Assembly (NCBI GenBank): GCA_051530055.1
Contig: CM121341.1
Coordinates: forward strand, 12,874,784 to 12,938,783
Direction of reading: 5' to 3'
DNA length: 64,000 nt
From: Neoechinorhynchus agilis
Lineage: Eukaryota > Animalia > Acanthocephala
Below the pieces are notes generated by a model, which searched no databases, was not told where the DNA came from, and saw nothing but the letters and a program-made list of their open reading frames with translations. The translations under genes were made by a program, and so were the position numbers. Positions 23,464-60,321 of the stretch are shown here, piece after piece (the stretch's first letter is position 1; every line of letters begins with the position of its first letter).

Positions 23464-24010
23464 TTATTCTAGTGGATGCACTGGATTCTCTTTGATGAAA
23501 TCCAAAACGAATTCCTCCGAAATTTGAAAATAAAATCTGAGTAACCTTTTCCCTATATCCTCGATGGTCTTTGAAACACGCCTGTTACGAGTTCCAAATA
23601 CAGGCAATCGACCCGAATGGAACCGCTGAAGATTATTGCAACGAAAGAACTTCTGAGCAAAGTTCCTAAGAATCTCGGCAGGGTCTTCGCCAAAGAATTC
23701 ATAATCAGGAATTATTCTGTTGGATCGAGCTTATCAATGATAGTAATGAATTTTCTGTAGTTTCCCGATATCGTCCTGCATTTCAATATATCGACTGTTA
23801 AATACCGCGACTATATCTCCGACATCATTCAATGAGACAAACGTTTAGAGGCTGAGAATATTGAGCTTATTTTGAGGATCATAATAAGGTTTGTGCTTTC
23901 CTTGAATTATATACGCAATGCGTTTTCAAGACTCGAATATATCTTTCATTTTAGGATCGAAAAGATAGGACTGAATTGTTAATAAGACGCATTGTTTGCA
24001 TATGAAGATG
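23464..24010 (-). pseudogene. MRPL13: Mitochondrial ribosomal protein L13 relic, not in the ORF track
   Basis: One frame reads YLFDPKMKDIFES*KRIAYIIQGKHKPYYDPQ[42-nt insert]NDVGDIVAVFNSRYI..HYYH**..DPAEILR..NNLQRF..RLPVF. This is colinear with uL13m motifs QGxHKPxY..NDCGDHVVxxNxR and DP..NLQRR..RLHLF. In-frame stops, no clear start. Confidence 0.7.
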
Positions 24011-24939
24011 GATAGTGGCGCTAATGTAAATGGAAAATGATCGTGTAGAGGAAGCGCCGCTATTACAAAGGCTAATTTAAAAAGAGCAACGAAAAATTGA
24101 ACTATATTGAATCGTACTTTTCGCCCTTTCTCTAATCTTTAATATTTCAATTTTTCGATGATTTCGTTGTATGAAATCAACTAGACTGGAATTCTCGGGA
24201 TTGTTTGTAAAGCGTTTACACTTTTTTGTAACAACTGTGACTACGAGCATTTTATTTTGACGCTCTTTAGTAGAAGTAAAGGTGAGTGCTTTTGGTTGTT
24301 TCTTGTGAAAATCGTGAAAAACGCCAATCGATATCATATTGTCAGTTTTCCATTCAGCTCACCAGTGGAGTCTGATGCTTTAAAAATTAACGAAAAACTC
24401 ATAGCGCATCAGCATATATTTGAAACTCTTTAGAACTACAAATGATTCTGTAGCAAGGATTTTTGTATTCTTTTATTTAAAAAGGTTTGATCTAACGTCG
24501 ACGCGGCGCAAAGCAACTTTGATAACGCGTTCACATCGAGAAATTCTTCTTTTAAGTTAGAACACAACGGAGCAAAATACTCCTTTATCAATGTTCAAGT
24601 TTTTAGTGTCACTATGAATACTTCCATCACTACGATCACCGGATTTACTTACCGTAACATCATGATTCGATTCGAAAGGTTCTCGATTAACAGCAATGTC
24701 CAAAAGACTATCGTCGGATTGGAGCTCAAACATGTGAGCAGAAACTCTTGGTACAATTTTCTTCATATTCACATTGAATAATCGTCGAGAAATCACGACG
24801 AATGGTTTATTGGTTCAAAATCCATTCGCCAGAAAATCTTGAGAAATTATGTAAACACGTTTTATTAATTTAAGAAAAGCACGATCCACACACTTCTCAG
24901 CATTTATCTTTGCTGAAGGAGTCTGGATGTCGGTTGTTG

Positions 24940-26720
24940 AGGGCAAGGGAGGTGGGACTTGTCTTTGAAGGAGTTTTAATGTGCGATCGGAGGCTTAGTA
25001 CATGAGATGACCGATTGGGAGTCTTTCCTTGTTCTCCGGTTATTAAGGAAAGATTGGGCTTGAGGGAAGAAAGATTTTTGGTAGAGGGTGGTACGAGCGG
25101 GGGGGGGATGAAAACGGGTGGGGTTCCAAGTGTTTACGAGGGAAGAGTATTTAGAGATGAGGGAAGAAAATTGTGGAGGGGGTTGAAGAAGACGGAGGGC
25201 GTTTTTGGAGAAAATGGAGTGGAGGTGGGCGTCGAGGGTAGGGAGTGAAGTCCCGCATATTCTCGCTGATCTCTTATGGAAGGTTTCGTGGGAATGGAGA
25301 GCATTGGCGGAAAGGGCGAGGAAAGTGTATGTAAGGATAGGGAGGATGGCAGAGAGATAAAAGTGGGCAAGGTGTTTAGGGGATACGCCGAGACGCCGTA
25401 GGAGTTTGAGAAGGTAAAGACGAGGGTTTGCTTTAGAGAGTGTAAATGAAATGTGGGCATCCTATTTAAGGTTTTCTTGTAAAATCAGGTTAGGTATTCG
25501 GAGAGAAGAGGAACGTTGGATGGGGAGAGGCGAGTGGATAAGATTGCGTTTGGAAATGTGGGGGGGCGAGGAAATGAGATGGTTGAGCTCGTCCATGGTT
25601 GTGGAGAGACAGAGAGAGGGAGATGCGATGGTAATGACTGTGAGGTCATCTGCATAGAGAAAATATTTGGTAGGGGGAGTGAGGGGATGAAGGTCATTTA
25701 GAAAAATGTCAAAGCGAAGAGGGGAAAATACGGCGCGGCGGCCAAAGGAAGCACATGATTGGAGGCGAAGGGAGTGATCCGCCGACTCAAACGCCCTGGA
25801 AATATCCAGATGCACGAGACGGGCGGTTGATGCTGGACTGCAATCTAAGCTGCGCACAAGCGTATCGTAGATGCAGAGGAGGGCATCAGAACAAGAGTAA
25901 TTGGACGGAAAGCGAATTGGTAAGGGGAGATGTTTTTTAAGGAAGAAGGGAAGTAGGCGGGTTTTAAAACATTTTTCTGAGATTTTAGAGAAAGGTGAGA
26001 GGATAGAGATGGGACGAAAGGATGTAAGGGAAATCGGTTTATCGTTTTTGGGTAGGGGGACGACACGGGTTTCCTTAAGACACGATGGGAAAGAGCCGAG
26101 TAGAAAGCTAAGGTTCGTTATGCGCGTTAGAGGATCGATAAGTTCCGGGATGATGAAACGAATGGCCCAATTTGGGATAGTCGAATTAGGGGAAGAATGG
26201 CGGGGCAAGCGTTTAAGGATCTCTAGGATTTCGAGAGGGGAAACTAAGGAAGGGCATGTATGAATGGGCAGGTCAGAAAGTGAGAAGGGAGGTTGGGACA
26301 ATGCATTAGGGGTTTGGGGATGACAGAGGTTTTTATTCGTGGAGTTAAGGATTGAGAGGAGAACAGATTTGGGGAAAGGTGCGAAGGGGGGGTGGATCTA
26401 CCAAGACCAGTGACATTTTTTATTTCACGCCACTAGTTTCGATTCCTCTCAATCCTTAACTCCACGAATAAAAACCTCTGTCATCCCCAAACCCCTAATG
26501 CATTGTCCCAACCTCCCTTCTCACTTTCTGACCTGCCCATGATTTGCGGGCTATACGGATGCGTTTGGTCAGTGTGGAGTGGAGGGAGGGGTAAGCGGGA
26601 TTGCCTGACCGTAAAGCTTTGGTTACCTGGATTTGAAGGGTTTTTAGAAAAGGCGAGAAGCATGGAGGGTCGCGGTTCGAGATTCGTATTGTTTTGCGAG
26701 AAAAGGAGGCCTTCATCGCA
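24940..26720 (-). mobile_element. Degenerate L2/CR1-like LINE, RT region
   Basis: FPSCLKETRVVPLPK..SFRPISILSPFSKISEK, LDISRAFES, YADDLT. Confidence 0.8.
26264..26540. repeat. Perfect 97-bp inverted duplication inside the LINE
   Basis: 26264-26360 is the reverse complement of 26444-26540. Confidence 0.9.
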
Positions 26721-26741
26721 TATTCTATTAGATTTAACAAA

Positions 26742-28620
26742 GAGCCCATTAAAAGAGGAAAACGATCTGAGGCTCGCATGGCAAGTCTTGAACTTGCCAG
26801 CCTCTATAATGAAAAGCAAAAGGCTTCGATAGAGGATGCAGTTTGCGGGATCGCATATAAGGAAGGTTTTGTTCGTACCTCCTTAGCATGGAGAGCGATA
26901 AACACTCTCACATGCAGATCCCAAAGACAGCCAACTTTGATTGAAGGTCCCTCCCCGGAAATCAGAAAAAAGAGAATCGCAAATTATTTTGCGGAAATTC
27001 TCAATTCGCCATTATCGTCTTTGGAAGTGAGTACTGCACTTCCAAAAGGCACAATCGTCCCAAGCACTGAGGCATATTTCACTGGACCGATTTTCGTGAA
27101 GGAAGCGATCGTTGCGGCGAAAATGATGCGTGCAGGACGTGCATCAGGCCCACATGGGATAATGGCAGAGGTTCTGAAGTTTGAATCGATTGCCAGAAAA
27201 ATCACACCGATAATGAATGGCATAATGAATAGTGGCTCAGTACCTCAAATCTGGAAAACGGCGCATTTAACAATGATCCCCAAGAAATGCTGCTCGACAA
27301 AGGTGGAGGACTACAGAGGTATATCCTTGATGTCCAACACGGCAAAACTTTTCAGCAGCATTTTGAGACGCCGAATTCAGCCAATCCTCGAACCGTTTCT
27401 AAGAATTGAACAGAACGGCTTCAGGAAAGGTCGAGGCACCACAGAGCACATATTGGCTTTGAGGAGGATCCTCGAGGAGGCACGAATTCATCAAACGGAT
27501 GTGACGCTGGTATTTGTTGATTTCCGTCGAGCTTTCGATTCGGTAAATCGAACGATGATTGGCGGTATCTTAAAGGAGTATGGAGTGCCGCCGATCATTG
27601 TCACATCCGCTATGGCATTATATAAAAACACAAGGTCCGCCGTCAAGACAGCTGACGGTTTGACAGAATACTTTTCCACCACTTCAGGTGTTCTGCAGGG
27701 CGACACATTGGCTCCTTTCCTCTTCATCTTGGTGCTTGATTGGGTAATGAGATGGGCACTACCGAATGATGAAGATGGATTTCTTCTGTTGAGGAAAAGA
27801 GGTCGCAGGTATCCTGAGATACGCGCCTCCTACATGGCATATGCCGACGACATCGTATTGATGTCCTCAACAGTCGAAGGAGCTCAACGCATGCTAAATA
27901 GACTGTGCGAGAGGGCGAGTATGATTGGTCTGACCATCAACTCGAAAAAGACGGAATTCTTGACGATTCCGCATGTCGCGCATACAGTCTCTGGCGAAGG
28001 GCCGAATGGCGTTGAGCAATTAAAACAGATAGAGCGGTATGTCTATCTGGGAGCTGTCGTTCCTGAGGTGAGTGCGGATGTCAGCCGACGGAGAGCTATA
28101 GCTTGGAGAGCAATGGGGCAACTTAAACCACTGTTTGACAGTGAGTCTTTGCCAGATGAACTCCGTTCGCAGCTGTTCAGGGCTCTAATTGAGAGCATTC
28201 TCTACTACAATGCAGAGACCTGGACACTGTCACCAACGGCGACGAGGCAGTTGGACCAAAATCATTCATCTCTCTTACGTGCGGCGTTCAAGGTCAGATG
28301 GTCAGATAAAGTGACCAAGAAAGCACTGTATAAGAGAGCCGGAGTCCAACCGCCCAGTGAATATTTGCGCCGCAGACGACTGCAGTTCACGGGCAATATA
28401 ATTCGGTCCGAGGCATCTTGCCCACAGGTCGTGCAACAGTTCCTTTTCTGGAAGCCAACGACATTGTATCATAAAGGCAAAGGGAACTGTCATACATACG
28501 ATGACCTGATTTTTAAGAGACGCGAATTGCCCGCATAACAGGACTGCTGTCGTGTATTTTAGATCCCTTGCGGAGTCTAATTCTATTTGACGGGCTTATA
28601 CCTACGGTGCAGCGTAGGAA
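26742..28620 (+). mobile_element. 5'-truncated RTE-like non-LTR retrotransposon with intact RT ORF (26694-28538)
   Basis: ASGPHGI, DYRGISLM, QNGFRKGR, FVDFRRAFDSV, GVLQGDTLAPFLF, AYADDIVL. Confidence 0.88.
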
Positions 28621-31750: not shown

Positions 31751-31759
31751 AGGTTTTAA

Positions 31760-33336: not shown

Positions 33337-33590
33337 TCATAGCAATCTATCTTTTTTGCCTTTGTAAAGAGACAATACTGATACTTTTCCGACCGAAACA
33401 ACCTTGAATCGAACACCAGGAATATCTCCAACGGCATAGCCCTTTCGACCGAATATAGCCACCATCACCTCGTCGTTTTCCTCGATAAAATTCAGACAAC
33501 CATCCCGAGGAACGAAAGCAGTGATTTTTCGTCCATTCTTTATGAACTGCAACTCTAACGCATTTTCTAATGGCAGAAACTATTCCTTTC
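33337..33590 (-). pseudogene. RPS23: 5'-truncated 40S ribosomal protein S23 pseudogene
   Basis: AIRKCVRV / [46 protein letters not shown]; 1-nt frameshift near 33551; N-terminus replaced by CRE sequence. Confidence 0.9.
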
Positions 33591-33599
33591 GCATGAGAC

Positions 33600-34560
33600 G
33601 CTCACAGCACATTTTTTAGACATAACGATAAGCTGGCAAAATTAGACGAGACGGTGAAAGTCTCTCTCGAGAAAATTTTAAATACTCAGCTGTCGGACGA
33701 GGCCAGGCGTCAAGCGTCCATGCCTGTATCGTCCGGCAGTTTAAGTATCCTAAAAGCAGCCGAAATTTCTCTGCCAGCTTATTTGGTATCGTATAAAGCT
33801 AACCGCATATAGTTTAGTCTTTTCTTGGCGAGAATCACACTTTGGATGAAAATTTCGTGGAGGCTCTAAATCTTTGGTGTGAAGATTCCAGTAATGAGCA
33901 TGTACCCGTCAGTCAGTTTGGGACTAACCCTGTTAATTTCAGATTCTCGTGACCTGGTGAACCGAACTTGGTTGGCAGCAACCTCTACAAGAGAATCGGG
34001 TGTATGTCTCAACGCTATCCCAATCGCTTCTGTGGTTACCCGTCTCTCAGGCGAGACAGTAAAGATTGCAGTGTCCCCGAGACTTGGGGTACCGATGTGC
34101 ACATCCCATCGCTGCCGTTGCGGAGCGACCGTGGATCCATCTGAACGCCATGATCTTGTCTGTCGGCAATCGGGCGGAAGGTACTTACGCCGAAGTGAAC
34201 GCAATTCTTAGTCGTGCCCTGTATACTGTTAATGCGCCTAACATCCTAGGGCCGAGCAATCTTTGCCGACTCGATGGCCGTAGACCGTACGGTGTCACAG
34301 TATTCCCGTGGCGAGAAGGCAAAGCCTTCTTTGGGACGCCACGTCCGTAGACCCGCTTGCGGGCAACAACAACATAAAATTCGCCACTATTAAACCAGGG
34401 AGAGCAGCTTTCGGCCCTAATCACTGGCCATCCGAGATCAGGAGAATTCCTCCTACAAAACATCAGTCTTGCTGTGCTACGGGGGGGACGAAGCATCGGA
34501 CCTTTCGACTATTGCACCAGGACGGCAGCTGAGTGATCCAGAGCGGTGGTGTGAATGATT
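33600..34560 (+). mobile_element. CRE 3' fragment
   Basis: Highly similar to 13020-14100 (CRCG, PSNLCRLDGRRPYGVTVFPW). Confidence 0.85.
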
Positions 34561-37125
34561 TCGGCTCCCAGATTTTGAAGGTTATATTAAATAAAAAAAA
34601 TCATCTTAGCCTATTAAAAACATCCACCACATTATTTGCCCGAGAATTTTGTAATTGTGAAAAATAGATTTTTTATGTATTTACTTTCACAAAATATTAA
34701 CGACGATTTTATCGTGCGAAAAACAATTAATCCATTTAATCTCTATTTTTCTTGAGCACATTGAAAGTAGCAAATCTTATGAGTGCGTTTAAAAGATCTA
34801 TCACCTTAAGACTTAATGGATCTAACGCCAAAAACAACAGCGATTTTGTTAAGTATTTGCACATTACCCCGAATAAAGAATATTTTGAAGCTAAAAAATG
34901 CTTCTTAGTTGACGAGTATTTAAAAATAAATTTGAATGTGGCAAAGTAAGTGATTTTTAAGTGGGAAATAAAGTCCTAAAACCTTCACTGATTCTTAATT
35001 ATTTCATGATGTTTGTAACGCAAATATAAACGATCTTGGGACAACTGAGAATCACGTTAACTCAGAAAACTGTTCGAATCTTATAACGAGTTTTGTCTAA
35101 ATTAAGAGTGCCTAAACCTACGTCGCGAAAAAGTCTTTGTTTTATACAGAAAACCCATTCTCGAACGCAGTAATGGTGTGTAAGCTTTAATTGAATCAAA
35201 GGGGCCAAGTAGTAATTAAATCACAAAGAATTTCTCTTGGAAAAACGTAGACGCACAATACCAAAAGACCATTTTTATCCTTGAGCCGCCCGGTGTAGTT
35301 GTAGATCAAAAGATTTTTGAAAGTAAGTAACATTTCTCTCTGAATTGTAAGTCTAATTAAGGAGTTTCTCTGTTGTTTTTGGCGTTTGTAGCCAGTTACA
35401 TTTTTTGAAACCCGAATAAACTTACTCATTGCGATAAACTCCCCTATGGATGATAGAGTTTGAATTGTTGTGGTCCCCGGATAATACATATTTTATTGAA
35501 TTTATGGTCGTTACTAAGCTTCATCAGTAATATAAAGCGATTTAGTTCTTTTTTATTGTGTGGCTCGCAATATAAAACCTTTTACCGCCGGAGTATGCTA
35601 TTTATAAGTCTTCACTCTGTAAATAACTTTTTTGCACTAAAGACGTTCTGAGAACCTCGTCCAGTTTATCGGCATTAATTTTTTTAGGTTCAAAACGTCT
35701 TACATCTCGACATTTTGATCAAAAAATTCTTTTTAGATGACCCGGATGAGGCGAAACTTCGTCTTTCGGAATATTTCTTAGCAATAAAATACGTTTTATC
35801 CGAAGGTGTTTATAATCAGCCCATTTCAAAGATGTCCTATTTCATTGTTATTTTGCGGTTGTTTATGAACACCCGAGGGGGACCATTGAAGACGAATGAA
35901 TATTTCAACTGATTGTATCATTCATTTAACTTATATAACTATCATTCGAATAAAATGCTCAATGAAATTTCCTATTACGTTTATGTAAATACATTTGTTT
36001 CGGTTCTTTAGAATTTGATTGGAATTATTTTCACTTAACCGGTGATTTGGCTTATTCCTTTCGATTGTTTCAACCTGGCGATTCAATATGGCCTCCATAA
36101 TAACACGATCCAATTTTGTTTCACTGCGCGCCTCCATGACTTGGCCTTGTTGTGCGAAATGGTTCTCCTCACAGCGTGTAAAAAATAAACGGCTGATTTT
36201 GGGACATAAGCTCTGGTCTGCGCTAAATACCCACGAACCGTTCGGTTCTCGACAAGGCGAGGCATGTTTTATTGACTAATGAAATCTAGAAATTAAGATC
36301 AAAGTTGTTTGTTGCTTTTCTAACTGAAACAATTTGACTATATTTCAAACTGATATCCGCGTAGAATTGATTTTGTATTAAAATCCTCCGAAAATGATGT
36401 TCTCACTAATGATAAAAATGCCATGTTTGCTGTCGCAAATCCTTTTAGTTTTTATTGGAGCTGCGAGAATACGCTTTTGAGTCATAGTGAAAAGCGACAA
36501 AGTGCGTTTTCGCTCTCTACAAAAAAGACAAATTTGATAAGTGCCACTAAAAAGTCATCATTTTCACATCAAACGTAAACCGAGAATTCCGTATAAGGTG
36601 GGGCGTGTAAGTGATCGATTGATACTTTTCGATGGTTCTTGATTTAATGACATCCGACAAAAGTCTAATAAAACGTCTAAAAAAGATCCCAAGCTCAGGG
36701 TGTGACAACGCCTCGATTCCCTCTGGCACCGGTGTCAATAACCCGGTTATGATTCTTCTTTTTAGTGGCGGGGACGCCATGCGAAAACTTTACCCACATG
36801 TCTCTTTTTTTGAAAGCATTAAGGCTGTGAAAAATTCTGAGAAATGAACGAACTGACAGTACTCCTCAATCAAATCGAGCAAGGCGTAGTAAGTGTTCAA
36901 AGAAAACAACGACCTTTTTCGACCCTACAGTTGATACATTCATATAAGACGAGCGAACTTAGTATTTCTATTAACTTCCATAAAAAATCACTAAGGACGT
37001 GAACGTCTTCCGGCAGTTTCCGTTTTTTTCGCATGGGTCTAATCAATGGAAATGTCATTTGTCTGCTTCTATCATATACACATTCCTCTAGCTTCTAGCT
37101 GACTTTTCACACACACGTCTTAGGT

Positions 37126-39590: not shown

Positions 39591-41807
39591 TTAATCAGAA
39601 TCAGACGAGTCCGCAGCGTACGTCCTTCGTCTTCCTCTCCGAATTCGCAAACTTGAGCGCCTAGGGGGCGACGGTAACCGTTTCCTAGATCTCGGCAACG
39701 AGAAACTTGGATCTTTATCATCTTCACCTAAATCTCTATGGGTTTCATCATTAGATTTTGAATTGTAAAGAACACTGTGTTCGGCAATGGTCATGGAAGC
39801 GAGATGCCGATGACTCGTTGGTGGAGATCCCGGTTCGGTCTTGATCTGATGAGTACGTAACAAAACTTCATTTTCAGTCGGTTCGGTTGACTGTTTATTA
39901 TTTAAGCGCAAAGTTTTCACTCTTTGAACCGGCTTTCTCCGTTGACTCGACAGTGGCTTTCTTTGTGAGGTCACTGTGCGTCCGGGCCCCATTGCTGAAT
40001 ACATTCCTTCTTGATCTTCTACACCGTAGTTTCCGCCCTCCTCGTCCGTGCTGCTCATATAACTCGCCTTCGCTCCTGCAACAATGTTAAGATGATCCTT
40101 TTTCATGTGATCCTTGGACGTCTTCATATGTAAGACGCACTTTCTGCAGAATTTGTACTTTGAGACGAACTGTCCGTTTTCTTGGTTGAAATGTACCATG
40201 AGATGCCTTAGAGCGTTTTCACAGTCCAAGTATAGAATTGTGTCTTGAGCAGCGTCAGTCTCAATGGATCCCTTTCTATTACTTCCCGCGTAAGTGGGTT
40301 TGAGTTCAACTGCCTCAAGGCAAAAAGGACAATAAAAAAGATCTTCACCTCGATGAAATACAGTAAAATGGAAAAGCATATCAGCATGGAAACTTGTTCT
40401 ATAGCCACAAACGTCGCAGCTATAAGGTAACTCCATTCCACAATGACATACGAATAAGACTCTCTCGACATGATAAGCACCATTTTTATCGAGAAAGACT
40501 TAATGGCTTAAATTAAGATGACAAGCTAACTCGAGAAGGCTTCGATGATTCTGCTCACAGATCCGGCATCTATACTGCTTCATGTCGTGTATGTGAGTTT
40601 TATCCAAGTGAAGAATGTACTCAAACGGAGTCTCGAAGGTCGGCTGGGATGGACAGTAAGCACAAGTTCGGTTGATCGCCGCGGCATACGGATCTGGACT
40701 CATTAATACGGTCAAATTCGGATCTATGAGTCTATCGTGAATCTGTTCCTCGGTCCAACTCACGACATCTTCAAGATGACCACACAAATGACCAGCCAAT
40801 GAAATGTTGTCCGTTATTCCAAAATCGCATATGCAACATTTAATCTTTGAAACGTTGAACCGATGAGCGACCGTAAGACACTGAGTCTTAGAACTCCATT
40901 TATTCGAATAGTATTTTTTTAGAATACCACGGTACGAAGCTTCCAATTGTGTCTCAAGACCTTCTTCTCGTGTCCGGATAATCCCTGGACGAAGCGCAGG
41001 AATCGCATTTGATCCCTCATAAGGATTATGGATTTTCTCTTGGAATGCCGATTCCAAAAAAGGAATACTTGCCTTGGGTCCTGGAATCGGTCTGCTGCTT
41101 TTAACCGGCTGACGAATTCGTTGTCCACAACATCGAAGACACGAATCCTTAAAGTAACCATGCTCGCAAATCGGCCGATTTAACGCCGTACAATCAAAAT
41201 GGAGGAACGCCGTCCGGTCCCGGATGGTTTGTCTGTTCCGGACAGCCTGATTTATGTTTTCAGCGCCATAAAGTCCTCCTTGAAGAGGGGGCAACGGACC
41301 TGACCATGGCTCGGATTTTATAGTTGAAAACGAAAAGTCCTGTCCACCGACAATAGAGATATTGTCTAAATTTGCAAGACCAACAGCCGGGTCTTCTAAA
41401 TAATGACTGCATCTCTTTTGGGTTTCAGAGAGTTCGTCATTTTCGCTTACCATTATCAAAGATCCAGTTCTACTCAATATTTCATCACTAACGTCATTAT
41501 TTATATCCATTAGAAGATCGACAAACTGCGAGTTGCATTCAAGAGTCCAATTGTGCTTATTGCAGCATTCAAACCGACAAGGAACAAAATCCGAATGAGG
41601 TTCTTTTTTCATACGAATCGAATCCTCAATCGAAAAATGATCAATGCAAATCAAAAACTTTAATTCCTCATCCAGCACAATTCCATAGGGCCAACACGCA
41701 CGGATCCATAATTCAGCCAATCGTCTTTCCTTCGGCAACGGAACAAGCCTGTCCCATTGTTTGTGTCGAGAACATGTTAGAACTATGCACCGGACTTCCC
41801 CATGCAT
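39591..41807 (-). CDS. THAP-domain plus ZNF280/POGZ-like C2H2 protein, two exons (41807-40503, 40442-39591)
   Basis: THAP: CIVLTC..LPK..W..ICIDHF. Joined fingers CRICEQ..HLNLSH|CGMELPYSCDVCGYRTSF..HF..H..FYCPFC follow the ZNF280 pattern H-x(KPGEMPYV)-C. Confidence 0.8.
40443..40502 (-). other. Candidate non-canonical stem-loop intron (60 nt; a 51-nt form is also possible)
   Basis: Begins with an in-frame TAA; 14-bp stem (40502-40489 with 40468-40455); flanked by a CATT direct repeat; no GT-AG solution keeps the finger histidines. Confidence 0.7.
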
Positions 41808-43156: not shown

Positions 43157-44311
43157 ATGGGTATTTTAGAGAAGATCCATGAGATCGAGCAAGAAATGGC
43201 TCGGACTCAGAAAAACAAAGCAACCGAATACCACTTGGGTCTTCTAAAAGCTAAATTGGCACGTTATCGTAGTCAATTGATAGAAGCAAGTACATCGAGT
43301 CAGAAATCGGCAGGAACGGGTTTTGACGTGATCCGAGCCGGTGATGCTCGTGTAGCGTTGGTGGGGTTTCCTTCGGTTGGAAAGTCCACTCTTCTTCAAG
43401 CACTGACGAACACGGAGTCCGCAGTGGCTGCTTACGAATTCACGACGTTAACGTGCGTTCCGGGAGTTCTCGACTACGCCGGAGCTCGAATTCAGTTGCT
43501 CGATTTACCCGGAATTATCGAGGGAGCTCACGAAGGACGAGGAAAAGGCAAGCAAGTGATCGCTGTTGCCCGTAACTCCGATATGGTCCTTATGATGCTC
43601 GACTCAACCAAGGCAGATTCTCAACAACGAGAAAAACTGGAGTATGAGCTAGAATCCGTTGGAATTAGGCTTAATAAAAAACCACCCCCGATATACTACA
43701 AAAAACGAGCTACCGGCGGTCTATCCATTAACGCGATGGTCCCTTTGACTAAATGTCCCAAAAATCTGGTTCAACAAATCCTTCACGAATACAAGATTTT
43801 TAACGCTGAGATTCTGTTCCGAGAAGATTGTACTCCTGATCAGTTGATCGATGTAGTGATTGGTAACCGCGTTTATATTCCCTGTCTCTATGTCTACAAC
43901 AAAATCGATGCGATTGCGATCGAAGAAGTCAATCGCTTATCATTAATTACGCTTCTTTTTAAAAATCTTATAGAAATGTAATTGCTGATTGTAGCCAGAC
44001 TAAAAGACTCGATTGTATGCAGTTGCAATCTTAAATTGAATTTTCCTTACGTCCTTCGAAAGACCTGGGAATATTTAGAGCTGATTAGAGTTTACACAAA
44101 GAAACGAGGGCATAAACCCGATTTGGTTGGTGCGAATATTGTTAGAAATGGAAGCCGAGTTCGCCATATTTGTCTTCTTATTCACAAATCAATGATTACC
44201 AATTTCAAATATGCGCTCGTCTGGGGAACAAGTGTCCGATTCAGCCCACAAAGAGTCGGAATCGCTCATAAACTCCATGATGAGGACGTTGTGCAGATCG
44301 TAGCGAGATAA
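43157..44311 (+). CDS. DRG2: Developmentally regulated GTP-binding protein 2, two exons
   Basis: MGILEKI..KATEYHLGLLKAKLA, GFPSVGKST, YEFTTLT, DLPGIIEG, YNKID, TGS domain KYALVWGTS..SPQRVG. Confidence 0.95.
43939..43992 (+). other. Candidate non-canonical stem-loop intron (54 nt)
   Basis: Removal restores EEVNRL-ARL; contains an in-frame TAA; 18-bp stem 43939-43956 with 43972-43989; ends AT..GT (junction can slide by about 1 nt). Confidence 0.8.
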
Positions 44312-44769: not shown

Positions 44770-44893
44770 AGAAAAGAATGTACTGCTTGTTTATGGCGGT
44801 GAAAAATTAAAACAAATTTATTGATTCCACTTTTGAATAACCTTGATCAAGAGGCGTGCAATTGGACTCAATAAATTCTATTAATTTTTTCAC
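44770..44893. mobile_element. MITE family A copy
   Basis: Reverse complement of 11788-11915. Confidence 0.8.
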
Positions 44894-45886
44894 TAACACA
44901 TAAAAACCCTCGGAATAATTAAAAAAAATTAAAAAGCAATTTTACTGAACTTTTTAATTGATTGTTACACACTGCCTTTTCTAATTTTGAGTTCGAAGGA
45001 CAGAACTATGATCAAATAGATGGGCTGGCAATGGGAAGCCCACTTTAGCCAGTTCTTGCTGAACTTTACATGAGACATTGGGAGGAGTCAAATTTGACCA
45101 AGTTAAGAGGTATAGAATTCTGGTGTCGATATGTAGACAACACCATTATCACATTGGACCAAGACAGAAGGACAGCTGTCCAACTTCAACAGGAACTAAA
45201 TGAAAAAGATTCCCATATTCAATGGACATGCGAAAAAGAAGATTGTGGTTTTTTACCATTTCTCGATGTACAAGTCAAAAGAAACTATGATAACACTTTC
45301 TCCACATCGGTCTATATCAAACAGGGTGTCCCGCATCGAATAGTACCTTGGATCTCAGCTCAACCACACAAATACAAATTATCGAGATTCCGATCACTAG
45401 TCATCAGAGCATACCGATATAGCTCGAACTTGAATTGCCTCAATAACGAACTCGATAGATTATGGAATATATTTAAAAGTGGTGGCTATCCAAAGAAATT
45501 AATGTTAAGAACATTGAAAGATACTCAACAAATGATCGGAAGGGAACCTACAAAAAATCGGGATATCGGATCTTCAACGAATGCAGACACACGATATATA
45601 GAAATTCCTTGCATAAATGATAGGTGGAATTACAATATAGAAACATTGGTCAAACAACTCGATATGAAGAAGGAATGTATTATGTATTCCAAAAGGGGAC
45701 AAACACTATATAGTTTGTTACAACCTAAAAGAGTGGACAATATAAACGAGTGCGTCTATAGGATCCCCTGCATGGACTTTGATCAATCGTATCTAGGACG
45801 AACGAACAATATAAAGAGACGGCTCAACGAACATCGCAGAATTGTGTCCAAAAGAATGGATACAAACTCTGCGATTGTACACCACG

Positions 45887-48800
45887 TGTGGTGGACACAA
45901 ACAGTTTTATTCAACTTGAAAATAACGGTATGTGTAAATGCGTACGTGCGAGTGGATTAGTAACCGGCTGAATTATGGCGACGGTCTCGTATAATTTTTA
46001 CATCATTCTCGCCCTCTTAGAGTTTTCACTGATATCGTTCTGGTCTTCGTCGAATTCGTGTAGATCTGCGGAGTTCCGGGGCACTCGTAGAAGGTTGACT
46101 CGGGAATATCTCAGTACGGCAATCAGTGGTACAGTTTTTTTTGTCTTCTAGTGGGACCTTCGTTTCGCAATCGTTTGGATCACCGGAACCCGGTCTTCGA
46201 CTGTCTTCGTCTGGACAATTGATGAGATTATCGTTAGTGCTATCACGTACTGGAAGTTTGGGAAGGTCCTTGGTCGAAACTGAACTTTCCGTACCATCTT
46301 CATATCGTATTCTTGCATGTGTTGAATTCGCTTCTATCAATTCAACTTCTCGCACTAGCGGTTCTGTTTTATTTCGCACGAAATTGCGTAATAATACTCG
46401 ACCTGGAGACAATAACCAGGACGGGAGTGACGAGCCATAAGATGATCGCCTCGCAAAGCTGAAAAATCGGTCGTGGGGAGTAGAGTTGGTTGTTCGTACG
46501 ATTAGAGGCCGAGCGGCGTGCAAGGCTTGAGGCAATACCTCCTCCCAATCCGATATGCGCAAACCGCGTGAATGGATAGTTAAGCTCAGGGATCTCCAAA
46601 TCGTGCCATTGAATCGCTCTACCTGAGCGTTGCCCGTAGGATGATACGAAGTAGTGCGGCTGCTGGCTATTCCGTTCGCCCTCAAGAACTGACTTACTTC
46701 GCTGCTCAAGAAAGCCGCTCCTCGATCGCTGTGGACATATCCAGGAGTCCCACACAGTGAAAAGATTGAAGTAAGGCATCGAATTACCGTCTGACTGTTG
46801 ATATTTTCACAAGGAATGGCAAACGAGAACCTAGAGTATTCATCGATTGCGGTAAATAGGTACTTGTTGGAAGAACGGGACGGAAGTGGGTCTTTAAAGT
46901 CAATCGATACCCTATCCATCGGCTTTAATGCCTGTATCAGTTGGGAGTCCACAGAGGGTCTGTAAAACTGCGGTTTCACAAAAGCGCACGTTCTGCAGTT
47001 CGAGCATATCGACCTGACCTCGGATGTAGAGAATGGTAAGTTCTTCGATCTGACAAAATGAAGTAACCTACTAACTCCAGGGTGGCAGAGTTGCTTGTGA
47101 ATCTCTTCTAAGTCAGTCAGGTCGATTGCATTGGCCCTCGATAACGCATTCGCAGCGATATTATCTTTGCCAGGGCGATAACGAATTTCGTAGCAGAGGT
47201 CAGAGAGCTCAATGCTCCAGCCTAGAATCTTGTCGTTCTCAATTTTGGTTCGTTGGCGACTGTCCATCATAAAAGCTACCGATTGTTGGTCAGTTATAAG
47301 CTGAAAACGTCTTCCATTCGGTAGAGGTCTCCATTTTCTGACAGCTTCGACGATTGCCATCGTCTCCTTTTCGACGGCAGGATATCGCATCTCGCACTTG
47401 TTGAGCGTCCAGGACATGAAGGCCACAGTTCTTCCGTTTTGGTTCAGTGTGCCCGAAACGGCAACATCAGGCGCGCCGGATTCGACGGTGAATGGGCTAT
47501 CCGCGTTAATAGCACCCAAGGACGCATTTCCCAACTCTTTCTTCAATTCTTTGAGAACTCTGATCTCATCGGTTTCCATCGGAAATTTACTACATTTGTA
47601 GAGTATTTGAGCTTTCGACGAAAATTCCTGGATCCACTTTGAGTAATAGGCCAACATTCCGAGCATTCGAGCTAGACTTTTTGAATCAGAAGGAATAGGC
47701 ATTTCAAATAAGGAACGCAGTCTTTCCGGATCGGGCCGAATCTTTCCATTGCAGATGTTGTAACCCATTAGATTGATAGATCGGACCGACGATATAGTTT
47801 TGGAATGATTCAAAGTCAACTTCCGTTTCTCGACAGCTTCCATAAAGAGCTTTACATTCGAGTCGCGTTCCTCCTGTGATTTACTTGCTTGCTACAGTAA
47901 CATTATCTAGATATGAAATCGTACACTCCAAATTCTCTTCTTTAATCATATTATCCATCGCCCTTTTAAATGCGGCGACACCGTTTGTAACGCCAAAAGG
48001 TATACGCGTAAATTGGTAAAGATTACCATTCGCTTCGAAAGCGGTGTACCGTCTTTCGGAAGCAGGTATGCCGATTTGATGATACGCACTTTTTAAGTCG
48101 AAGGTAGAAAATACGCGGTATTGAGCGATGGTATTAATAAGCTGCTGAAGGTTATGCAATGGGTAAGCGTTTAACGATGTAAATCTATTGATAGTCTGCG
48201 AATACTCAATAACTAATCGCTTCTTGTCTGAATTCGAGTCGTTTTTGACGACTACAATCTGGGATCTCCACGGAGATCGACTAGGTTCTATCACGCCTGC
48301 ATAAAGTAACCTTTTTACTTCACCATCGATAAAAGAACGGTCTTCAACGCTAAACATTCGCGATTTGGTCACAACAGGCTTAATATTCCGAAGGATCGAG
48401 TTAAACAATGGGGTTTCCAACATATCAGCTTTGATCAAGTTGCAACAGTCTGATAGGGGCCTGATTGTCAATTCATCTTTGGAACCATTATAGACAAAAC
48501 GAATGCTTCTGTGGAGTTTTTGAACTTCTAGACCGAGTATGACGTCCGTACAAGGGTCCTCCAACACACTGAATTTGACAGCCTGATAAGTTCGATTTTC
48601 CACAAGAATGTCGACGAGACATTTGCCTTTGATTCGAATCTGTTGACTTGTCGTAGCCAGCTTGACTATACCTTCCGATGCAATCGTTTTTAGTCACAGA
48701 TTCATGGCAACCTTGTCGCTAATAAAGTTGCTCGAACTACCTGAATCGATCATAGCAGATAACGGTAGCCCCTCAATGATCACGCCTATAAGGAACATTC

Positions 48801-49747
48801 GATTGATTGGATCTGCAAGCTCGTCGCTGGCACATAGAAACATAGTAGCGGAGGCGTCCTTCTACCGCTTTTCTAAGGGCTTGGATCGATATACTTTACC
48901 CCAATGGCCTATTTTTCCGCATTTCGAACACTTAGACTTTCTGGCAGGACAACGAGATCTTGTATTCAAATCAAAACCGCAAAACCAGCACTTTTTGACT
49001 TTATGGCGGCAGCTATTTCCATATCCTCCATTTCAGGCTTTTGGTGCGAAATCGATGGTGGAGCTTCAACATAAGCTGCAATAGGCGGCGCTTGACGGTC
49101 ATAAATTTCAGCGTTTCGCTGGCCGATCGCCTGGGTCAAACTTAGAGCATGATGTTCCAGAAGGCGTTGGCGAACTATGGGGGATGAAATCCCACTAACA
49201 AAAGCATCGCGAATGAGTTCTAGTTGGTATTGCTCAGCGGTCACGTCCGTTAACTGACAGTTTCGGCTTATGCAGTTTAGTTCTCGGAAGAACTCGTCGA
49301 TTGACTGAGATGGTTGCTGCTGGTACGTAGCCAACACATGTCTGGAAAAAATTGAATTCGCCTCCTTAATGTATGCTTTGTCCAAGATCGCAATCGCCTT
49401 ATCAAAATCTGGTTGGTCCGCTATCATTTCATATATGTTTAGACTGACGAAACGTATCAAACATTGAGGTTTGTCCGTACATTGATTTCCATATGCAGCT
49501 ACGAAGTTGTTAAACGTTTTCTTCCAATATTTGTATTCACGTTCAGACGAAGGAGCAGTCGGTTCGATCGTTAGTTTTTCCGGACAGAGAACTCTTTCCA
49601 TGATACGGGATTTTTTCAAGTTGAATAAATTGTGGTGGACACACAGTTTTATTCAACTTGAAAATAATGGTATGCGTACGTGCGAGCGGATTAGTAGGAG
49701 GCTGAATTATGGTGACGAGGAATTAGTCGCCTATAATTATTACGTCA
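45887..49747 (-). mobile_element. Complete Ty3/Gypsy LTR retrotransposon with broken ORFs
   Basis: TG..CA LTRs 45887-46005 and 49631-49747; 5-bp TSD CCACG (45882-45886, 49748-49752); gag with zinc knuckle, protease MIDSGS, RT YLDN, RNase H, integrase HPG..C..C and IDFK; purine tract next to the 3' LTR. Confidence 0.95.
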
Positions 49748-50450: not shown

Positions 50451-50622
50451 CATCCGTAGTTCCGACCATTACAAAAAGGACGACAGCTAAGTAATCCAAA
50501 GCTATGGCGTTAAATGCTTTTCGCACTCTTTTTGGTATATAAAAGCCTGACTTCTTAAGAATTCGTTTTCGACTGGATCTTCCCCAATCTTTGGTCAATG
50601 CTTTTAGACGTGAGTTGGTGAT

Positions 50623-53699: not shown

Positions 53700-54625
53700 A
53701 TGTACAATAGACGATTTACTGATTTTTCGATCGATCGATTGCTTGGACGCTCATTTTGCATGGACGATATTTTGGAGACCCCTATTCAAATACCATTCAA
53801 AGGAGGTCACTCTTCGTTTCAAACTCCATTACAAGGCATAAACGACGACAAATCGGACGAATCTGATCAAAAGCAATATGTTGAAGATAAGCTTGATTTA
53901 TTTTATGCTCCGCCCGCTTTAGGTGTTCTTAATATACATTTAGGGGCGAAAAGAAGAAAGATAAGTAAAAATTCGTTGCTAACGAAACACAAATACATTT
54001 GCGAAATATGTAACGGTGGATTTGATAGACCTTCTTTGCTAGCTCGGCATGTCAGAATTCATACGGGAGAAAAACCTTTTGCATGTTTTGATTGTCATAA
54101 AAGTTTCGCTACTACTTGTGCCTTGCGCGCTCATGCTAGAATCCACACTGGAATTAAACCGTTTGTATGTAAAATTTGCGGCAAAGCTTTTACAGCCGAC
54201 AGCAATCTTCATTATCATATGTTTACTCACAAAAGGGGAGAACTCCCACATAAATGTTTAGTTTGCCAAAAAGGATTCGCGACACCTTCAGAACTTAAAA
54301 ACCATCAACCATCGCATACAAACCAATGGCCTTTTAATTGCAAATGTGGAAAACATTTCGCAAAGCCGAATCTTTATAAACGCCATCTTATGAAGCATCT
54401 TGGTAAGTTTTTGTTTACTTTTAACTCACCAATACTTTATTTCCGTATTTTTCCATAGGTATGAAAGACGAAGAATGTCCTTTTTGCTCTAGAAAATTTA
54501 CTGTACCTTCGAAGTTGGAGGAGCACGTTAAATCAATACATGGAAAACAATATAATGGACAATACAAAGACGAACATTTTTCTTTAAACAACCTCATTGC
54601 TGCTTTTGACAAATCATCAAGTTGA
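53700..54625 (+). CDS. eh1-motif C2H2 zinc-finger transcription factor (6 fingers), two exons
   Basis: N-terminal FSIDRLL (eh1); tandem fingers with TGEKPF-type linkers; exon 2 GMKDEECPFC..HVKSIH. Confidence 0.88.
54403..54458 (+). other. Canonical GT-AG spliceosomal intron (56 nt)
   Basis: G|GTAAGT..actcac..ttccATAG|GT; splicing adds a sixth C2H2 finger in frame. Confidence 0.92.
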
Positions 54626-56142: not shown

Positions 56143-58245
56143 ATGGATAAAGACGACTTGGCTAAACTAGTGCCGATCAATTACATTGAACGGAGCGAAG
56201 ATGCATTAAGGCAGAGATTTTCTCCTATAAGACAGTTGTTAAGTACTCGTAAACTACCAATTGAAGGCTTCGACAAAGTGACTATTGATTATCTCGTTTC
56301 ACTTCTCTCTCAAATGGACAGTAACAATTATTTGAACATCGCCGGTGTCGGTGAGCGAGAAGGACGTATCGCTTCTCCTAAAGTATTTGACCGGGTTTAT
56401 GGAATGTGTCACGGAATCGGTCGTTCAGGCGATCTTTATGATGCTCAACCAAAAGCGTGTGGATCGAGTATCCTAGCGGCACTTACGAATCGCCTAGTGG
56501 TCGATGCTCTACAGGTTTCCGGATACAAACAAGCCCACGATGCATTTGTTGTTCCGATGGCTACCGGGATGACTCTTAATTTCTGTTTGCAATATCTAAG
56601 AAAATCGGCAATCAATGATGGCAGATCAGACGCAAACGTCGTCTTGTGGCCTAGAATCGACCAAAAGTCATGCATTATAGAGTAAATGGATCGGAGAGGT
56701 AGGTGGGCGAAAGGGAAAACAAAAATCTTTAATATTTATCTCGAAACTGAAATATTTTCGAATGATCTTTGTTCCCGTGCAAAGATTCGATGAGTCCTAT
56801 TTTTAATCACGAAACCTTTTGCACGAAAACCAAACGAACTTTTATTTTTTGACGAGATCAATGCTTTGTGCTTTATGGAACTAAAATTGATAGAGCTGCA
56901 AATCTTTTTCTTACTCTCCAAAGCGTTCACCATTATTACTTAAGCTTCCACGAATCCAGCCTTATTCTCTAGCATCAATTTCTTTAAAATTGTGGTGAAG
57001 ATACTTCGCCGTTTATAGTGTATTTTATTGAATTAAGAGATATTCCGAAAGGGGAAGCCTCGTCTAAATTAATCTAATCGACTGATTAATTTACAATGAC
57101 TCGTGAGGCGAGGCTTCCTCTTTCAGAATATTTCGTAACGAGAAAACTCACCGGCAATGACAAACCTTGAGAGGAAATGTCGAAACTATTCGAGAGGTGA
57201 AGTATCGGGGAAATACATCATCTGTGAGTTTAAATCCCCAGGGTAGACTTTTGCTTTACGGATAATCGCCAACTGTTTACTGAATTTTGCTGCGCTAAAA
57301 CACGATCCGTTCACCGAAAATCGATAACGCTATGCGGTCTAACGATAAAAGTGATTGAAAACGTAATAGAAAATGATCAAATCCGAACAGACGTCGATAA
57401 AGTAAAAGAAGTTATGCACTCAATTGGACGAGATAAGATTTTGTGTTTGATTTCGACCACAAGCTGCTTTGCCCCTCGAGCGGTGGACAAACTACTGGAA
57501 TTGGCCGAAATATGCCGGGATCATGAAATCGCTCATCTAATAAACAACGCGTACGGTGTTCAATCAGGGAAAATTGCTCATGACCTCGAAAACGCAGCTC
57601 GAGTAGGCCGTGTGGATTTCGTTGTTCAAAGCACAGACAAAAACTTTATGGTTCCTGTTGGTGGCTCAGTCGTATTTGCATATAGAGGTGATTTAAACGC
57701 CCTTCGAAAATCATATCCTGGTCGAGCATCAATGGCACCATCTCTGGATTTGTTTATAAATCAGCATTCTTCTTTTATTACTTTGCGACGAAAACTTGAA
57801 GAATGCTTATGTAACCCTTCTTAGTCTTGGCGTAAATGGGTACAAGTGTTTATTGCAAACGAGAAAAGAAATGTATCGAAAACTAAAAGATCGAGTTGAT
57901 GTTATAGCTGCCAAATATAATGAACGAGTTTTGAATACTCCTAATAATCCGATCTCAATGGCAATGACGCTTACGGGTTTCTCAAATAGACATGGCTTGG
58001 AGTCTGTTACTTCCATAGGATCGAAACTATTTAGCCGACATGTAACCGGATGTAGAGTTGTTCCTCTTGGCCAAGGAAAAATTACTAAAGTGGACGGAGT
58101 CGATTTCGTTAATTTCATGAGTCACCATGCCTCCTACCCTCACGCCTATCTGAATTTTGCGGCCGCGATCGGCATGAACGATACCGATATTGACCGATTC
58201 TGTAAGAAATTGGATGAAGTACTTTCTGAATATCGCAAGGAATAA
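56143..58245 (+). CDS. SEPSECS: O-phosphoseryl-tRNA(Sec) selenium transferase, three exons (56143-56676, 57318-57755, 57811-58245)
   Basis: GVGEREGR, HGIGRSGD..QPKA.GS, VPMATG, WPRIDQKSC, STTSCFAPR, NNAYGVQ, QSTDKNFMVPVGG, YPGRAS. Confidence 0.95.
56677..57317 (+). other. Candidate non-canonical intron (641 nt) with paired termini
   Basis: Removal gives DQKSCI-KSITLCG; gtaaatggatcg (56682-56693) pairs with cgatccgttcac (57303-57314); ends AT..GA. Confidence 0.7.
57040..57131. mobile_element. Palindromic MITE-like element nested in SEPSECS intron 1
   Basis: gaaaggggaagcctcgtct (57047-57065) pairs with gaggcgaggcttcctctttc (57105-57124). Confidence 0.65.
57756..57810 (+). other. Candidate non-canonical stem-loop intron (55 nt)
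   Basis: Removal fixes a frameshift and restores SLDLF-(V/I)TLLSLG; perfect agcattcttc/gaagaatgct stem. Confidence 0.8.
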
Positions 58246-59130
58246 TTTCCGATTTCGATGATTGAGCTGACTGCTTATACAAAAGAACGTTTTCTTTCCA
58301 AATCTACTGATTTAATTTATTTTAAGAAATGGTATCTTAAGTTAATGTAAAATTATATCCATTAACTTTACAATAATTTCCGATGGGAACGGGGAAACAT
58401 CTTTGTCCTCCTTTGCCTAGAGAATGCATTCAGCATTCCCTTTTTGAGAAATGATCCGGCACATTTTGTTACTTAACGGCCATCTCGATCTAAAAGTCTA
58501 ATTTTTTTACGCACAAAGAAATTGGATTTTCGAATTGCTAAGCTGATAGTTACATATAAAAGGTGGTCGTATTACTCCGACGGTCTATGTTTTTTAATAT
58601 TTAGATAGTCGCGTATTTAAGAAAATATCACATTCGAAAACTTAGTTGGAATTAATGATGCAAAATATAAACGTTCAAGAATTGCGTTGTCCTTTTGAAC
58701 CCGACTTCTATGATAGGTTATAAAAGGAAATACTAAGAATCCTTAATTTTTCATGTACATTTTTAAATTCCGACCGCACTTTCTAATTTTTGGAATGGTT
58801 TCATAGGTTTATTTATCAAAAACGATATTAAATTCTTGAATCTTGAAATTATTGAAAAAAATTAAATTTCGATGAGTGTTATCGAGATTTAGTTGAACCT
58901 TGTTCGAATTTCAAATATAGAATCAAAGTCATTCATAATGTGTATTTTAGAGTTCATTTCTTGAAAAAAAACTCCAAATCAGATTGCAGACTACATAAAT
59001 TAAAGCTATGACTACGCTTTCTCTTGCCGACATCTCGAAAACTTGTTTCGTAGCGCATTTAATAATCACAATACTTAATGGATATTGGTGAATATAATTC
59101 CTTTATAAAGAACCCTGTCTAAAATTGAAG

Positions 59131-60321
59131 ATGCAATGGACGCGCCACGTCGCAAAATCACTGCTCCAATGCTTGCGTCCGCAGAACAAACCACGAATTG
59201 CTAGTCGCTTTATCGCAGTAAAGTCCGTACATCAGTCAATGCGCCCAGTTGCATATTGGATGTTTGGTTGTGCTGGAATGTCCGCTGGTGCTATATTTTT
59301 GGGTGGAATAACCCGGTTAACCGAAAGTGGTCTGTCCATGACCAGTTGGCGATTTATTAAAGACATGAAGTTCCCTTACTCAGAAGAAGAATGGAATGAA
59401 GAGTTTGAAACTTACAAACAATTCCCAGAATGGGAATTATTGAACAAAGAGCGACAAATGACGCTTTCTCAGTTCAAGTTCATTTATTTTATGGAATATT
59501 TTCACAGAATATGGGGCCGCGGAACCGGCCTCGCGTTCCTTCTCCCGCTTGCCTACTTCTACCCTCGGATATCCACTCAAGGTGGTTCCCGGGCTAAGAT
59601 GGGATTAGCCGCGATGACTATTCTGATGGGATTTCAGGGATTTCTGGGATGGTACATGGTGAGAAGTGGACTGGAGTATGAAACTCTCCAAGACAATATT
59701 CCACGTGTTTCACAATACAGATTGACTGCTCACTTAACGGCTGCATTGGCGTTATATGGTTCTTTTCTGTGGACTGGAATTCATCTACTAAACCCCAAAT
59801 CGAATATTCTCTCATCCACTCGGCCTAGGTTGTTGATGAAGCTAACGTTGCTAAGTTTAGTATTGACCACAACCACGATCATATCTGGTGGATTTGTTGC
59901 GGGCATGGACGCTGGACTGGTGCATAATACTTACCCTGCGCCATGAAATCTTTTCTGTTAGATTTCATGGGATAAAATGTCCGGGCGGTGGATTCCCATT
60001 GATTATTGGTCACCTAAACTATCTATGTGGAAAAATTCATTCGAAAATCCATCCGCTGCTCAATTTAACCACAGAACTCTTGCAACATTTAGCTTGGCTG
60101 TCTTATCGGCGACAGGAATATTGGCTCGAAGAATTCCGATGCTTACGTTACCGGGGAATCTGATGCTTATCGCTACCACTGCTCAGTTCTCACTAGGCGT
60201 ATTCACTCTTCTTTACCAGGTTCCAATTTCGCTTGCATCAGCTCATCAAATGGGCTCAATTGCGTTGTTCTCCAGTGTTCTTTACCTTTTAGCCACTCTA
60301 CTTCGACTTCCGAAACCATAA
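59131..60321 (+). CDS. COX15: Heme A synthase COX15, two exons
   Basis: GGITRLTESGLSMTSW, FMEYFHRIWGR, QGFLGWYMVRSGL, VSQYRLTAH, SGGFVAGMDAGL, QFNHR, HQMGS. Confidence 0.95.
59938..59973 (+). other. Candidate non-canonical stem-loop intron (36 nt)
   Basis: Removal restores GLVHNTYP-KM; contains an in-frame TGA; perfect 11-bp stem ccatgaaatct/agatttcatgg. Confidence 0.72.

Follow-up and report, generated by a model that had tools for sequence, protein, structure and literature searches.

The stretch of DNA described here, which we call the window, comprises 64,000 nucleotides (nt) of contig CM121341.1 in assembly GCA_051530055.1, and its host is Neoechinorhynchus agilis, an eoacanthocephalan thorny-headed worm; a preliminary description of the same letters had rightly taken it for an animal. 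Along the window lie three conserved genes, DRG2, SEPSECS and COX15, whose coding sequences are interrupted by inserts. Our evidence base consists of genomic sequence covering about 0.3% of the genome, Pfam profiles and annotated proteins, and to define each junction we took the coding blocks that adjoin the insert, translated them and scored each one by itself against Pfam. Because profile coordinates run on contiguously across the DRG2 insert, both SEPSECS inserts and the COX15 insert (Table 1), all four are located to within one residue and need exact removal. This confirms the earlier claim that inserts lacking GT-AG ends interrupt conserved proteins here: the nucleotide registers of the junctions are ambiguous by 1-3 nt, and GT-AG ends are absent from every register of these four inserts that keeps the alignment. 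Each homology-supported insert carries stop codons or a frameshift and the flanking open reading frames (ORFs) are long, intact and conserved; since the genes look functional, the inserts must be removed. In DRG2 the border reads cgct(TA)TCATTAATTAC...GCTGATTG(TA)gcc, the insert ends pair over approximately 13-17 positions, and an in-frame TAA lies within. The first SEPSECS insert has a 12-bp terminal stem (GTAAATGGATCG/CGATCCGTTCAC; duplex -17.9 kcal/mol, z -2.1), the second a perfect 10-bp stem (AGCATTCTTC/GAAGAATGCT), and that of COX15 a perfect 11-bp stem (CCATGAAATCT/AGATTTCATGG) together with in-frame TGA and TAG codons.

Table 1. Interrupted genes, their inserts, lesser candidates and one ordinary intron in the window
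Feature	Position	Strand	Junction and remarks
DRG2 gene	43157..44311	+	otherwise intronless
DRG2 insert, 54 nt	43940..43993	+	Pfam MMR_HSR1_Xtn contiguous 76/77; TA..TA flanks
SEPSECS gene	56143..58245	+	three coding blocks joined by two inserts
SEPSECS insert 1, 641 nt	56677..57317 or 56674-57314 (AT..AC register)	+	Pfam contiguous 114/115-116
SEPSECS insert 2, 55 nt	57759..57813	+	Pfam contiguous 263/264; shifts frame; TA..TA flanks
COX15 gene	59131..60321	+	two coding blocks joined by 36-nt insert
COX15 insert, 36 nt	59938..59973	+	Pfam contiguous 217/218
ZNF candidate insert	40449..40508	-	60-nt TA..TA removal keeps frame and zinc-finger end H-x4-H (HLNL/CH)
MRPL13 insert, 42 nt	23827..23868	-	decayed MRPL13 fragment; flanks TA..TG; stem only 5 bp
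dsRBD gene, weak candidate, 69 nt	7981..8049	+	TA..TA removal gives ...ETSC/YECRLSIG...
Ordinary GT-AG intron (GTAAGT...CCATAG)	54403..54458	+	C2H2 zinc-finger gene; used in annotated 289-aa model; no terminal pairing

Four more loci of N. agilis, together about 87 kb from two chromosomes and retrieved via a protein of a long interspersed nuclear element (LINE) from the window, contain five further homology-supported inserts and two probable ones, and Pfam profiles are contiguous across nine inserts in total. RBM39 is split between two models by 1320 nt, in which an in-frame TGA comes before any possible GT, and its RRM_1 profile is complete (1-70) once the insert is removed. In the cyclophilin PPIG, removal of a 340-nt insert with a perfect 10-bp terminal stem (PPIG-3) gives FGHV/IEGIDIV and a contiguous Pro_isomerase match, and removal of 52 nt from AP1M (AP1M-C) gives GRSNLKSV/ELEDVKF, which we take to match the human sequence. 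ACSL, also in two models, carries 571 nt; with its junction placed 3 nt beyond the stem, the AMP-binding coordinates are contiguous (302/303/304). The 49-nt PPIL2 junction was picked by a screen for TA..TA repeats, terminal stems and ORF fusion rather than by homology; it yields YVSLRTSLGNLNLELYAD and has the best Pro_isomerase score of the versions compared (152.6 bits versus 150.8 and 146.3). As judged by these profile matches, the combination of TA flanks and stem has predictive value in PPIL2 and ACSL. The probable cases are 48 nt in the RS region of PPIG (PPIG-RS), removal of which fuses ORFs of 222 and 486 codons, and 41 nt with a 14-bp stem in a DZF gene, where the fused ORFs have 322 and 419 codons. 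At least 21 ordinary short GT-AG introns (AP1M 5, Memo 5, PPIG 2, Ral 2, UAP1 at least 3, NPC1 at least 3, ZNF 1) are confirmed alongside, so the class lacking GT-AG ends is a substantial minority, with 9 to 13 members among approximately 35-45 introns. About a quarter of the sampled conserved multi-exon genes carry such an insert, single-copy essential genes among them. The class of introns with pairing ends first proposed for housekeeping genes of the window is thus supported and extends to loci on two chromosomes.

The terminal stems set these inserts apart from ordinary introns. Dinucleotide-shuffled controls give hairpin z-scores of -2.9 for DRG2, -3.4 for the second SEPSECS insert, -4.4 for COX15 and -5.2 for the gap in ZNF, against +0.5 for the MRPL13 insert and -0.15 for the GT-AG intron of the window, which had correctly been called normal. 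Stems had been described for five of six inserts, and five (DRG2, both in SEPSECS, COX15 and the ZNF gap) do pair, leaving MRPL13 without one. When the 28 nt at one end of an intron are paired with the 28 nt at the other and the energy is taken as a measure of terminal duplex formation, seven non-GT-AG introns fall between -11 and -23 kcal/mol (z -2.1 to -5.2, p <=0.033) and thirteen GT-AG introns between -0.3 and -9.6 kcal/mol, with z mostly above 0. Perfect hairpins of at least 10 bp show an enrichment of only about 2.7-fold across the window as a whole, and perfect 12-bp and 11-bp hairpins lie within uninterrupted conserved exons of PPIL2 and Memo (locus L005, 8512-8577 and 11465-11518). 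A stem alone is therefore not diagnostic, and the evidence is the coincidence of a stem with a homology-defined gap. Where stem positions depart from Watson-Crick pairing, G.U exceeds A.C by 9:3, or by 7:1 with symmetric scoring, a weak hint of constraint at the RNA level or on the sense strand.

The key feature of the junctions, absent from the preliminary description, is a direct repeat of TA. When all equivalent registers of each insert are written out, TA..TA flanks are present at six of the nine homology-supported inserts (DRG2, SEPSECS-2, PPIG-3, AP1M-C, ACSL and PPIL2), and in those six the conserved mRNA is obtained exactly when the element and one TA are taken out. With a conservative L-to-I change RBM39 follows the same pattern, COX15 has TG..TA flanks, one mismatch away, and the candidates PPIG-RS, DZF, ZNF (60 nt) and dsRBD (69 nt) each have an in-frame TA..TA solution. 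A specific 2-nt repeat at a junction has a chance of approximately 1% per intron, and its occurrence in at least five of seven is far beyond chance by this estimate, which is not a computed test. The stems start 0-8 nt inside the 5' TA and finish 0-8 nt before the 3' TA. Taken together, the repeats and stems are best read as traces of a DNA transposon that inserts at TA, as in the Tc1/mariner type, the repeats being its putative target-site duplication and the stems its terminal inverted repeats; the arms of RBM39 and PPIG-3 contain CAGTGCTGG and CAGTGAC, which resemble Tc1-type repeat ends. The TA flanks also explain a rule proposed earlier, that the stem ends exactly 3 nt before the downstream junction, with T/R at the upstream junction and a purine opening the next exon: it holds in chosen registers only, the real offset is 1-5 nt, and offset, T/R and purine all follow from the TA. 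The related suggestion that structure is the conserved feature is not established by the stems, the TA..TA junctions making the stems best read as inherited terminal inverted repeats.

One insert, that of DRG2, was checked for a lineage-specific position. The orthologue of P. laevis is intronless and its site is empty, so the DRG2 insert appears, on this comparison, to have been gained within one lineage.

The lesser candidates in the window differ in how far homology fixes them. Removing the 42 nt from MRPL13 makes the Ribosomal_L13 match contiguous (profile 25-64), which upholds the proposed junction, though in a truncated relic, the remainder of which a Pfam search did not find. The relic lies in a transposon-rich stretch shared with an RPS23 relic and a thioredoxin-like (Trx-like) ORF. 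For ZNF the proposed junction is not fixable by homology: two same-frame ORFs are parted by a single TAA, which opens a 48-nt hairpin, and among TA..TA removals the frame survives only at 54 nt and 60 nt, being lost at 46 nt, where nothing but the bare hairpin is cut out. The dsRBD gene likewise consists of two same-frame ORFs parted by one TAA; Pfam does not separate its two versions and its fold is not significant. A perfect 10-bp hairpin at 10967-11011 lies within a 426-aa zinc-finger ORF (10168-11448) and keeps the frame; a 52-nt TA..TA removal would break it, and this case was not counted.

We regard it as probable that these inserts are decayed insertions of TA-targeting transposons or miniature inverted-repeat transposable elements (MITEs) that are removed from pre-mRNA as non-canonical introns. 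On this account, DNA transposons or MITEs with a Tc1/mariner-like target site and terminal inverted repeats would have landed in coding exons and would now be old and decayed, the cell removing exactly the element and one TA from pre-mRNA so that the genes stay functional. Once transcribed, the inverted repeats would pair as a stem, leaving the two TA junctions only a few nt apart, and the unit so defined would be spliced out without GT-AG signals while ordinary GT-AG introns are processed alongside. The machinery may be a major spliceosome tolerant of such introns, on the Fritillaria model, or a distinct pathway guided by structure, on that of Euglena. We infer removal at the RNA level and favour it over the DNA level because COX15, DRG2 and SEPSECS must be expressed in germline and embryonic cells as well, because the inserts are built like the transposon-derived non-canonical introns known from Fritillaria, Amoebophrya and euglenids and, as a weak sign, because G.U outnumbers A.C in the stems. 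Complete BUSCOs are also more frequent in the published transcriptome than in the genome (54.9% versus 47.1%, both low; PMC12690905), which we count in favour of the same reading.

Several observations weigh against it. The first SEPSECS insert is without TA..TA flanks, and a blastn search of 13 elements against about 150 kb (approximately 0.3% of the genome) found no families and no copies other than those of an element nested in that insert. This agrees with the earlier remark that the inserts share no primary sequence, and the lack of repeated families is unusual for MITEs. The stems may be just inherited inverted repeats without a role in removal. Two scans for a stem with ORF fusion, which brought PPIL2, PPIG-RS and DZF to light, were flooded by false positives and provided no usable statistic for TA enrichment. 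Finally, in-frame GT-AG alternatives are available at four of the nine inserts (COX15 42 nt, AP1M-C 70 nt, SEPSECS-2 73 nt and PPIL2 46 nt), each of which damages the alignment.

The nested element just mentioned (57033-57138) has 33-nt arms that are 85% complementary and partial copies at 35749-35792 and, in L005, at 932-959 and 1459-1486; it is the sole repeated sequence in any insert. Elsewhere in the window, a palindromic MITE-like repeat occurs between genes in two copies of opposite orientation (11785-11896 and 44799-44893, with neighbours at 11909-11990 and 44696-44777). Crude extension of intergenic palindromes gave no clear TA flanks. Tandem arrays with units of about 123 nt and about 121 nt occupy approximately 17200-17930 of the window and 3360-7005 of L005, the former with internal inverted repeats and a spurious 172-aa ORF. 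Among the dense, mostly intron-poor genes lie LINE copies, a Penelope-like element with a GIY-YIG domain and a Ty3/gypsy element (18557-21843, 25462-28538, 45070-45960 and 46026-49619), and one LINE family recurs at least five times. Scans against Rfam and for tRNAs returned no matches in the window.

Removal by a route other than the spliceosome, whether a structure-guided RNA endonuclease and ligase of the Euglena type or ciliate-like programmed DNA excision in somatic nuclei, is in our view the less probable course. The DNA variant taken by itself, in which TA-bounded elements are cut precisely from expressing (somatic, polyploid) nuclei with one TA left behind and the assembly represents germline or embryonic DNA, we consider unlikely. 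The TA..TA borders, the single TA retained and lengths of 36-69 nt do match the ciliate pattern, and the worms sequenced whole included egg-filled females (PMC12690905), such that germline or embryonic DNA may have dominated the reads. Such cells would still carry the inserts in COX15, DRG2 and SEPSECS, however, and presumably need these genes too, and the bias towards G.U over A.C fits a stem at the RNA level better, if weakly. The terminal consensus of ciliate eliminated sequences is TAYAGYNR, with which the heterogeneous ends that follow the TA in N. agilis (TCATTA, AATCAG, AGTTCA, CTCAAC, AGCTGA and TGAGCC) do not agree. We know of no report of such DNA elimination in Syndermata.

That the spliceosome instead uses nearby canonical or cryptic GT/GC-AG sites, with the restored alignments coincidental and the genes without such sites truly truncated or split, seems improbable. 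In its favour stand the four in-frame alternatives given above, three of which BRAKER used (AP1M-C, SEPSECS-2 and PPIL2), the perfect CAC/GTAAGT with which PPIG-3 begins, and one ACSL register that ends in AG. Nearby sites of this kind, the use of which in transcripts was named at the outset as counting against the class, do exist, but each alternative damages the conserved alignment: the 42-nt removal in COX15 would take out VHNTYP and the 70-nt intron in AP1M deletes KSVE. BRAKER sidestepped the second SEPSECS insert with the 73-nt intron and split the gene. Profile coordinates are exactly contiguous only with non-canonical removal, and for DRG2, SEPSECS-1, RBM39, PPIG-3 and ACSL there is no frame-keeping GT-AG pair and no suitable register for a canonical U2 GT/GC-AG intron, the annotation truncating or splitting these genes.

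It is more improbable again that the inserts mark disrupted alleles or pseudogenes, as null insertions either polymorphic or fixed, or that they are assembly artefacts. Decayed genes do occur in the window: besides MRPL13, there is an RPS23 relic (33340-33601, minus strand) with a 1-nt frameshift within SAIRKCVRV/QFIKNGRK, a 36-nt deletion and a missing N-terminus, and a Trx-like ORF (22470-22862, minus strand) in which the stretch with the WCGPC active site is missing (DFYARW/FTRSVKEV), a decayed or degenerate thioredoxin fold. The loss of many conserved genes has moreover been described for this genome (PMC12690905). The interrupted DRG2, SEPSECS and COX15 are, however, otherwise free of defects over 360-470 codons, and about a quarter of the conserved multi-exon genes sampled are affected, including single-copy essential ones. 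An insert-free paralogue, which would have marked these copies as disrupted pseudogenes, was found for neither DRG2 nor SEPSECS in searches that returned other annotated proteins of this assembly. The combination of TA duplications with inverted repeats bears a biological signature, and the MaSuRCA consensus was built from Illumina reads (PMC12690905); both points stand against this reading.

Ribosomes hopping over inserts kept in the mRNA, as in phage T4 gene 60 or the mitochondrial 'byps' of Magnusiomyces, can be set aside, for although the short inserts have a stop codon near a hairpin, the take-off and landing codons mismatch, inserts of 340-1320 nt are far too long and the genes are nuclear. 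Other known substrates also fail to fit. U12-type introns have the 5' consensus /ATATCCTT (or GTATCCTT) and a branch site TCCTTAAC near the 3' end, and SEPSECS-1 (ATTATAGAG...CAC) and RBM39 (ATATGAGCC...) are without either the 5' or the branch motif, excluding AT-AC introns of this type. The flanking exon ends do not pair into the outer helix of a tRNA-type bulge-helix-bulge, inspection revealed no twin 7-nt CNGNNGN loops of the IRE1 type, and the stems are too short for Microprocessor cleavage.

Returning to the reading of transposon-derived introns, its consequences are visible in the published annotation. The N. agilis assembly (46.2 Mb, hybrid, from whole worms) was annotated with BRAKER2 based on RNA-seq (PMC12690905), and its models break at the inserts: DRG2 ends at 274 aa, at the stop within its insert, SEPSECS is annotated as two models (154 and 252 aa), COX15 as two (280 and 114 aa), RBM39, ACSL and PPIG are likewise split, and only the upstream 435-aa ORF of the ZNF gene is covered. 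Protein searches with DRG2 and SEPSECS returned no N. agilis protein that spans the junctions, the truncated window model alone appearing. The first SEPSECS model (56143-56685, equivalent to locus L008 15521-16063) encodes 154 aa in a 543-nt range, which implies a predicted intron of 78 nt that is probably false; the stretch aligns to the SepSecS profile without a large gap. Fusions of AP1M and Memo to LINE-derived peptides at the C- or N-terminus, in models P0335 (L004 10001-13460) and P0340 (L005 10001-11591), are a second type of annotation error in GCA_051530055.1. Part of the acanthocephalan 'gene loss' and low BUSCO scores may therefore be an artefact of truncated and split models. The words 'intron', 'non-canonical' and 'hairpin' are absent from the genome paper, and the paper and its supplement are silent on introns and splicing (PMC12690905); in the literature we searched, non-canonical introns were not described from Acanthocephala. 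The feature itself is real and, within that literature, has gone unreported. If the reading is right, a sizeable transposon-derived class lacking GT-AG ends would be present in a second and independent lineage of animals, placing a protostome parasite beside the larvacean tunicates, and N. agilis would be a natural system in which to ask how exact removal works without a splice-site consensus. Public resources for the species include 74 RNA-seq libraries (PRJNA1223661), a Trinity transcriptome (Zenodo 10.5281/zenodo.17199078) and genomic Illumina, ONT and HiFi reads (JBMGUZ01).

Among the closest known systems are the internal eliminated sequences of Paramecium. They are short, bounded by TA, interrupt coding sequence and are thought to derive from Tc1/mariner elements, and they are removed by a domesticated transposase from the DNA of a separate somatic nucleus, leaving one TA. 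The N. agilis inserts share the TA at both ends and the retention of one copy; to our knowledge no such nuclear dualism exists in animals. Stowaway or Tc1/mariner-type MITEs combine a TA target-site duplication with terminal inverted repeats, as the N. agilis elements do, two of which have CAGTG-type cores; the N. agilis elements, by contrast, are much shorter, belong to no multi-copy families that we could find and lie in exons of essential genes. The introners of Amoebophrya (Farhat et al. 2021, PMC7789003) also have inverted repeats, short direct repeats at their borders and non-canonical splice sites, and differ in that their direct repeats are variable (3-5 nt) and their families strain-specific, where N. 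agilis has TA and no families were detected.

The nonconventional introns of euglenids (Milanowski et al.; Nomura et al. 2025, PMC12501133) resemble those of N. agilis in coexisting with conventional introns, in having variable borders and lengths of tens to thousands of nt, and in ends that pair a few nt from the junctions, with duplication-like border repeats and a purine opening the next exon, which in N. agilis is due to the TA. Euglenids are protists, and circular excised RNA is known from them. The Euglena signature 5'-N3-CDG...CH'G-N5-6/R (PMC12501133) was not found in the inserts, which have no CAG/CTG-type core and offsets of 0-8 nt at the 5' end and 2-10 nt at the 3' end. In its coexistence with strong-consensus GT-AG introns and its lack of a shared intron motif the N. 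agilis class is Euglena-like, and in its animal host it is like Fritillaria.

The 'N' introns of Fritillaria borealis are transposon-derived, and their removal by the spliceosome and a duplication of U2AF have been demonstrated (Henriet et al. 2019; Soo et al. 2026, PMC13326754). The contrast originally drawn with them is smaller than claimed. The same logic applies in both animals, an inverted-repeat transposon and its duplicated target site supplying the junctions, with a short direct repeat of which one copy immediately precedes the 5' junction and the other closes the intron at its 3' end. The repeat is TA in N. agilis and a YAY triplet in Fritillaria, the AG/AC or AG/AT consensus of Fritillaria is not seen in N. 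agilis, and GT-AG introns are the majority in N. agilis as opposed to 5% in F. borealis. Recognisable element families, a further mark of the Fritillaria type, did not emerge when the 13 elements were compared with the roughly 150 kb searched; three other marks, namely non-GT-AG termini, terminal inverted repeats that form hairpins (as measured against the 13 canonical controls) and a target-site duplication at the junctions, were found. Overall, the N. agilis inserts are best filed among the transposon-derived non-canonical introns, as a variant flanked by TA and from a second lineage of animals.

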